Shown one piece after another: positions 7,578 through 7,742 of a stretch of 32,000 nucleotides of DNA. The notes beneath the pieces were generated by a model. It had not been told where the DNA came from. It was given only the letters and a program-made list of their open reading frames with translations, and ran no database searches. The DNA is taken from NCBI GenBank assembly GCA_000002975.1, contig AF083031.2, forward strand, positions 142,134 to 174,133, written 5' to 3'. Within the stretch, counting starts at the first letter, position 1, and every line of letters begins with the position of its first letter. A program made the position numbers and the translations under genes. This stretch comes from Guillardia theta nucleomorph (Eukaryota; Protista; Cryptophyta).

Positions 7578-7582
7578 AAAAA
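7578..7582 (-). terminator. Pol III terminator (T5)
   Basis: First run of 4 or more T on the minus strand downstream of tRNA-Trp, immediately after the snoRNA box D. Confidence 0.55.
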
Positions 7583-7638
7583 TCAGTGTGTTCTATAAAT
7601 CAATTTATTCATACAAATGCCATATTTCTTCACAGTAT
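7580..7638 (-). ncRNA. candidate box C/D snoRNA (snR13/U15-like guide for the LSU Am2281 equivalent)
   Basis: On the minus strand: box C GTGAAGA (7633-7627), D' ATGA (7612-7609), C'-like TTGATTT, box D CTGA (7586-7583). Guide GGCATTTG is complementary to LSU CAAATGCC (29615-29622), and the D'+5 rule gives A29618. Ends are approximate. Confidence 0.65.
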
Positions 7639-7662
7639 ATATTGTTTATAATAAATATTAAA

Positions 7663-7742
7663 TGAGATGAACCGGATTTGAACCGATAACCTTTGGATAT
7701 GTTATACTGGAGTCCACTGCGCTACCGTTGCGCCACCATCTC
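7663..7742 (-). tRNA. trnW: tRNA-Trp(CCA) with 8-nt intron (7699-7706)
   Basis: Cloverleaf: acceptor GAGATGG/TCATCTC, D stem GCGC/GCGC, anticodon CCA, T arm ATCGG-TTCAAAT-CCGGT. Intron TATAACAT at 37/38; 72 nt once spliced. Confidence 0.93.

Follow-up and report, generated by a model that had tools for sequence, protein, structure and literature searches.

A tRNA-Trp gene and a box C/D snoRNA gene that follow each other closely on the minus strand of the Guillardia theta nucleomorph raise the question of which polymerase makes the snoRNA. An initial annotation, made from the sequence alone, assigned the DNA correctly to a nucleomorph and proposed that the snoRNA rides on the internal RNA polymerase III (Pol III) promoter of the tRNA. 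The stretch of DNA that was analysed (the window, to which all positions refer unless stated otherwise) comprises the last 32 kb of AF083031.2 (GCA_000002975.1, 174,133 bp), which we take to be G. theta nucleomorph chromosome 3; this record encodes the protein of positions 8941-7790 without a single difference. It carries AT-rich genes up to about 18.8 kb and then an rDNA unit, with the 5S gene on the opposite strand. Upstream of the SSU rRNA, positions 19000-23000 have about 50% GC and a strong skew of T over A (down to -0.45).

The tRNA-Trp(CCA) gene occupies positions 7663-7742 of the minus strand (ARAGORN; Rfam RF00005, 52.8 bits), with its anticodon at 7710-7708. The A box (7735-7725) and the B box (7683-7673), read from the sequence, match the textbook consensus of a type 2 Pol III promoter, and the internal promoter invoked by the proposal is intact. 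A cloverleaf read from the sequence has an 8-nt intron (7699-7706, minus strand) at the canonical 37/38 position, which the intron mode of ARAGORN puts at a wrong place; the gene measures 80 nt, as compared to 72 nt for the mature body. Between N73 and box C of the snoRNA lies a spacer of 29 nt (7634-7662, minus strand), in which T3 is the longest T run. As the initial annotation had observed, this holds beyond the spacer as well: over 7662-7583 there are only T3 runs (7662-7660, 7655-7653, 7617-7615 and 7599-7597) and no T4, and beyond the tRNA at least four T residues in a row are first met in a T5 (7578-7582, minus strand) directly behind the CTGA of box D. The contrast that it drew with tRNA-Arg(CCT) is also correct. 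This gene (11262-11342, minus strand), which has a short anticodon-loop intron and is syntenic in the related loci L003 and L013 (between beta-tubulin and rpl32), is followed by a T8 at 11250-11243, 11 nt beyond N73 (11262). No additional tRNA genes were found in ten further kb of G. theta chromosome 3.

Both neighbouring protein genes are on the same strand as the pair. Upstream is the gene for 26S proteasome AAA subunit 6B (Rpt3; 7790-8941, minus strand), with its stop codon 47 nt before tRNA-Trp, which is a possible source of read-through by RNA polymerase II (Pol II) into the tRNA-Trp and the snoRNA. Downstream is orf305 (6619-7536, minus strand; 305 aa), for which a Pfam search gave no match; since its ATG is only 46 nt past box D, the promoter of orf305 probably lies in the snoRNA, the spacer or the tRNA. 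Another reading frame of the window, orf456 (5209-6579, minus strand), is the Pol III subunit Rpc3, with 29% identity to a syntenic Hemiselmis andersenii protein that has a POLR3C domain, as was proposed before (PMC6559170).

The box array about 30 nt downstream of the tRNA is real, with its boxes at 7633-7583. It consists of a variant box C (GTGAAGA, 7627-7633), the D' guide GGCATTTG (7614-7621), box D' (ATGA, 7609-7612), a box C'-like element (TTGATTT, 7597-7603), the TGAT core of which is present in most orthologues, and box D (CTGA, 7583-7586), all on the minus strand; boxes C, D and D'/C' thus come with the GA dinucleotides of K-turns. The suggestion that positions 7580-7638 encode a C/D snoRNA is borne out by work that was already in print: the RNA at 7571-7638 of the minus strand is GtNM-R15 (R15), a C/D box snoRNA of 68 nt mapped by small-RNA sequencing and published by Asman, Curtis and Archibald in 2019 (PMC6461891), who give GUGAAG as its box C, CUGA as its box D and LSU-A2551 as the target of its D' guide. 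The entry in their Suppl. Table 5 has the same ends and the same length, with a few internal slips in the machine-read text. R15 is expressed in all six published libraries, with TPM values of 254-982 in the four untreated ones. Reads from tRNAs were filtered out, the cross-species search covered at least R5-R9, and the paper gives no neighbouring genes, promoter, polymerase or tRNA link for R15. What the present analysis adds are ten orthologous loci, the conserved order of tRNA-Trp and snoRNA, and a second guide in some of the loci.

The mapped ends agree less well with the proposal. A species of 55-60 nt ending in oligo-U at about 7580 had been predicted, with the T5 as its terminus, whereas the mapped RNA of 68 nt ends at 7571, which is 12 nt after box D and 7 nt beyond the T5. 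At least some R15 molecules therefore did not end at the T5, even though most could still do so, the 3' boundary having been set by visual inspection of read peaks (PMC6461891). The 5' end was considered with the help of the published treatment with 5'-monophosphate exonuclease. The ratios of treated to untreated TPM of R15 are 0.78 (dark) and 0.23 (light), with one library per condition; they are 0.9-1.9 for U1, U2, U4 and U6 and below 0.5 for most other nucleomorph snoRNAs. The values for R15 fit processing from a longer RNA and single out no one polymerase. As a more general observation, the ratios of R5-R9, R11, R12 and R13 are only 0.01-0.45 while the snRNAs are undiminished (Suppl. Table 6, PMC6461891; one library per condition), and this depletion suggests processed, uncapped ends for most G. 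theta nucleomorph snoRNAs, which the paper reads as capped.

The D' guide obeys the +5 rule. It forms 8 Watson-Crick pairs with CAAATGCC in the LSU rRNA (29615-29622, plus strand) and would direct modification to A29618, which is LSU-A2551 of Asman et al. (2019). Eight pairs are below the usual 10 or more, yet the guide is invariant in 11 orthologues. The published work equates LSU-A2551 with human A3764 and Arabidopsis A2271, the targets of SNORD15 and U15, respectively, and its authors allow for convergence with SNORD15/U15 (PMC6461891). Apart from the shared target adenosine, there are differences from this family. R15 spans about 51 nt from box C to box D, as compared to 146 positions in the Rfam model, and has its guide before box D', near the 5' end. 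The gathering score of RF00067 (75 bits) is reached by none of the sequences: G. theta gives no match, and L023 and L026 score 13-14 bits, with the guide and box of L026 weakly matching model positions 124-141 (14 bits, E 0.24). The yeast counterpart of SNORD15/U15 is snR13. When folded, the G. theta RNA showed no canonical terminal stem flanking boxes C and D, no rRNA target was found for its D-box guide, and the orthologues gave only sub-threshold generic C/D matches in Rfam.

Two further elements in the window resemble published orphan RNAs. The AT-rich intergenic stretch from 13423 to about 13517 (plus strand) is similar, by eye, to GtNM-R19. At 18049-18074 (plus strand), near the rise in GC towards the rDNA repeat, a short box C-like ATGATG and a CTGA 16 nt apart are reminiscent of the 5' part of GtNM-R18; this element, for which no convincing rRNA target was found, is possibly a truncated copy.

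The weight that can be given to the T-poor flank of tRNA-Trp depends on how often such flanks arise by chance. A stretch of 80 nt without T4 has a probability of 0.27 under mononucleotide and 0.22 under dinucleotide shuffling, and 28-31% of the minus-strand 80-mers of the window lack T4, so the absence of T4 is within chance expectation. Long T4-free tRNA trailers occur anyway, since in two related loci tRNA-Trp is followed by T4-free stretches of 85 nt (L013) and 116 nt (L011) that do not contain the snoRNA. Nor is a T run behind box D diagnostic of a dicistron, because L024 has a T7 right behind box D although a T9 in the spacer precedes the snoRNA; in L003, L013, L018 and L025 the 12 nt next to box D contain no T4 or longer run.

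The spacer may also hold a terminator of another type. The octamer TATTTATT (7650-7657, minus strand), at +6 to +13 after tRNA-Trp, contains overlapping TAT3 and T3AT2 motifs, and interrupted T runs are partial terminators for human Pol III in vitro, T3AT2 being called a strong one (Orioli 2011, PMC3141230). By analogy, TATTTATT is a candidate non-canonical terminator of the tRNA for nucleomorph Pol III, with the proviso that such motifs are common in DNA of 78% AT. The closest related locus, L017, has T2AT3 at +5 to +10, the same place, and T runs are found at a comparable position behind tRNA-Arg (T8 at +12) and in L026 (T6 at +9). No Pol II promoter motif was identified for R15; a TATAAA at 7650-7645 was not accepted as a promoter, since the mapped 5' end is only 12 nt away and the surrounding DNA is 78% AT.

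Further evidence comes from related nucleomorphs. Loci were collected by way of genes related to the upstream Rpt3 gene and in one scan of metagenome data for the T-arm of tRNA-Trp. The resulting set has 11 distinct loci, namely G. theta, its close relative L017, Hemiselmis andersenii (L003) and eight more, none of which was identified as that of C. paramecium or Ch. mesostigmatica. By sequence and gene order the 11 loci form about five groups and are not independent samples. In all 11, tRNA-Trp is followed by the snoRNA on the same strand, the T-G-A-x-G core of box C and the 8-nt guide are invariant, and box D' is conserved (ATTA in L011). No tRNA-Trp adjoins the Rpt3 gene in L007/L008 and L028/L029. 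A generic C/D scan of the collected loci with a guide minimum of 9 nt, which misses R15 as well, found no other tRNA-linked snoRNA.

While the order is general, the T4-free stretch is limited to G. theta and L017. When spacer length (nt), longest T run in the spacer and longest T run in the snoRNA are given in this order, both of these have 29/3/3, and the other loci have 71/10/7 (L003), 66/5/5 (L020), 60/6/5 (L026), 90/4/6 (L013), 86/9/5 (L023), 82/9/4 (L024), 199/5/6 (L011), 331/9/4 (L018) and 334/10/4 (L025). If L017 is counted with Guillardia, runs of T4-T7 are thus found inside the snoRNA in 9/9 of the remaining loci and runs of T5-T10 in the spacer in 8/9, and canonical Pol III read-through cannot therefore make this snoRNA family. 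Four of the about five locus groups are, to judge from their sequences, incompatible with canonical Pol III read-through. The T-free state of L017 gives no independent support, since the identity of its spacer (26/29) equals that at third codon positions (90%); protein identity is 96%, and L017 has a T4 behind box D.

The pair has also been moved as such. Rpt3 is upstream on the same strand in G. theta, L017, L003, L020 and L026. In L013 only the two RNA genes are inverted, between the Rpt3 gene (prsA3) and the ORF preceding rpc3; L023 and L024 share a divergent upstream ORF with L013, and L011 and L018/L025 have other neighbours. The order of tRNA-Trp and snoRNA was thus kept through inversion and translocation in at least four gene-order contexts, with one clean inversion among them. 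Judging from these arrangements, the joint movement may reflect functional coupling, or only a proximity of 30-330 nt. Gene order differs further upstream too. In G. theta a DHHC-tubulin-rpl32 block (8891-11712) is upstream of Rpt3, while an FtsJ gene takes this place in L003, L011, L013 and L026 and the block is behind cdc48 in L003, L011 and L013; because of this different placement of the block, the region is taken as rearranged in the Guillardia lineage.

Some orthologues have features of their own. The most degenerate one is that of L011 (12866-12939 of that locus), 199 nt from the tRNA, with TTGATGT as box C, ATTA as D', an intact guide and an ambiguous box D (TTGA at 12917 or CTGA at 12939). 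A second guide, TTTCGTTCT, is present before box D in L013 (11384-11315, minus strand), L023 (1718-1785) and L024 (1401-1467). It is complementary to AGAACGAAA in the SSU rRNA (from SSU position 1203 of the window on) and matches the guide of Rfam snR54; G. theta R15 is without it. In L003 (11318-11377) and L026 (11312-11370), TTCGATCC upstream of box D, from which it is separated by a T run, is complementary to SSU GGATCGAA (position 1218), a site that is 15 nt from the snR54-type site.

Transcripts that span the locus are known as assembled contigs, which can chain overlapping transcripts or include genomic DNA. The G. theta transcriptome contig L002 (1-1939, 1.9 kb) starts in prsA3 and covers Rpt3, the unspliced tRNA, the snoRNA and orf305. 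With this start it is not a Pol III product, and it is the only spanning RNA seen in G. theta. As proof of one molecule it was rejected, since contig L031 of the same sample chains six genes. The chaining of six protein genes in L031 (1-6822) and of two in L002 reflects overlapping transcription or genomic DNA in the library. Three H. andersenii contigs (L004-L006) run from the Rpt3 gene (prsS6) through the tRNA, with its intron unspliced, and end just past the snoRNA; internal oligo-dT priming is suggested by the fact that they end at a genomic A15 tract. Overlapping and antisense transcription of nucleomorph genomes has been reported as widespread and pervasive.

The explanation that we prefer, with a probability of roughly 0.58, is that of a stand-alone tRNA-Trp gene beside a conserved snoRNA gene, with the snoRNA being trimmed mainly from Pol II RNA. 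On this best reading of the sequences, tRNA-Trp and the snoRNA, which are neighbours throughout the sampled cryptophyte nucleomorphs, would have had their spacer cut to 29 nt by compaction in Guillardia. All or part of the Pol III transcription of tRNA-Trp would end in the T-rich motif at +6 to +13. Pol II would be the main source of the snoRNA, with a promoter that lies within the spacer or shortly before it, or by way of pervasive read-through RNA over the locus, and trimming of the Pol II RNA would leave the protected C/D core. R15 would then act together with fibrillarin, Nop56/58 and Snu13 to 2'-O-methylate LSU A2551, and any Pol III that leaked as far as the T5 would be a secondary source of the snoRNA. 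A Pol II origin is favoured because of the T runs in the orthologues, the end of R15 past the T5 and the chance level of the T-free stretch, because contigs with an unspliced tRNA intron cover the locus in both G. theta and H. andersenii, and because of the reported pervasive overlapping transcription. The assignment of R15 to this polymerase is indirect, and the terminator argument is borrowed from human Pol III in vitro. A plain neighbourhood, moreover, accounts for a pair that is stable through inversion and translocation by the short distance only. The preferred explanation and its rivals can coexist, as a leaky terminator lets some Pol III reach the T5.

The strongest of the alternatives, although itself doubtful, is a Pol III dicistron confined to Guillardia and its close relative, which would start at the A and B boxes of the tRNA, end at the T5, be cut by RNase Z after N73 and be trimmed by a 5' exonuclease over about 24 nt to give R15. 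It is conceivable for this lineage alone, because there is no T run of four or more to stop Pol III before 7582. The intact promoter boxes, a T4-free stretch that G. theta and L017 have and the 9 other loci lack, and the shortest spacer of the set (29 nt versus 60-334 nt) are all in its favour, the T5 may suffice as a terminator since the 5S rRNA in the window has a T5 at +17, and the partial depletion of R15 by the exonuclease is what would be expected of an RNase Z product. However, the T-free stretch is no longer than chance allows, L017 is too close to count separately and has a T4 only, the mapped RNA passes the T5, and exonuclease sensitivity is common to most nucleomorph snoRNAs. On account of the chance-level stretch, the 3' end past the T5, the motif at +6 to +13, the T runs in orthologous snoRNAs and spacers and a 24-nt gap that plant dicistrons do not have, the proposed ride on the tRNA promoter with an end at the T5 is not supported, leaving the interpretation of the initial annotation partly supported. 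The literature search, which left many subscription papers outside its coverage, found no report of a nucleomorph RNase Z and, as the initial annotation had supposed, none of a nucleomorph tRNA-snoRNA dicistron. If the dicistron exists, its distribution would make it a derived state in Guillardia: compaction would have shortened an old spacer to 29 nt with loss of its T runs, and a Pol II snoRNA would have been captured by the Pol III promoter of the tRNA, a course of events that we regard as tentative.

Known dicistrons offer a partial precedent. In plants, tRNA-Gly-snoR43 and rice tRNA-Met(e)-snoRNA units are multi-copy, and their processing by RNase Z has been shown (Kruszka 2003, as cited in PMC2566860). 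The G. theta locus is like these in that the A and B boxes of the tRNA are intact, the C/D snoRNA lies downstream on the tRNA's strand, and the two are not separated by a canonical terminator. The plant units are without a spacer, as in poplar, where the snoRNA directly follows tRNA nt 73 (PMC2566860), whereas R15 does not abut this nucleotide: its mapped 5' end comes 24 nt later and its box C 29 nt later, and the distance is 60-334 nt at the other loci. Furthermore, the tRNA and the snoRNA are different ones, there is one copy in the window, the orthologues have terminators, and the joint precursor is here a putative one. Another likeness is found in Yarrowia lipolytica, where, according to the same source (PMC2566860), tRNA-Trp-RUF70 and tRNA-5S are Pol III dicistrons, with RUF70 behind all 13 copies of tRNA-Trp and co-transcription shown. 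There, too, a tRNA-Trp(CCA) without a nearby T-track is followed by an RNA of about 70 nt, but RUF70 has no known function and is not described as a C/D guide, and the gaps of the Yarrowia tRNA-5S units are 4-7 nt.

A less probable alternative is that the tRNA serves as a processing signal: Pol II read-through from the upstream gene, or antisense or divergent transcription in the inverted lineages, would carry tRNA and snoRNA together, and an RNase Z cut at the tRNA fold would free the 5' end of the snoRNA. This would agree with the same order and strand in 11/11 loci and at least four gene-order contexts, with an L013 inversion that covers just the two RNA genes, and with the H. andersenii contigs, and Pol II is not blocked by internal T runs. 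On the other hand, the nearest upstream gene points away in L013, L023, L024, L011, L018 and L025, which leaves these six loci without a same-strand mRNA as a source of read-through. The A15 ends of the H. andersenii contigs suggest internal priming, genomes of such high synteny can be expected to keep genes linked over 30-330 nt, and only one inversion is clean.

That chance alone produced the C/D pattern in the AT-rich spacer, as might be thought because the G. theta snoRNA matches no Rfam snoRNA family even at E up to 10 and because its guide is only 8 nt long (a shuffled 8-mer guide matches rRNA 6% of the time), is ruled out by the expression of R15 in six libraries and the conservation of box C core and guide in 11 loci, with a known methylation site as the target.

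If the preferred explanation of separate transcription is correct, the locus is of little consequence, as the tRNA gene is a standard one and the snoRNA has been in print since 2019. A role of the tRNA as a processing signal would provide a reason for the linkage without Pol III making the snoRNA. If the Guillardia-only dicistron is real, it would add one more case to a mechanism already described in plants and Yarrowia; as far as our search shows, it would also be the first such unit reported for a nucleomorph, of independent origin and with the unfused state visible in relatives. Genome compaction would then have led a small RNA to change its polymerase, which would be relevant to the way in which nucleomorphs produce small RNAs with almost no intergenic space.
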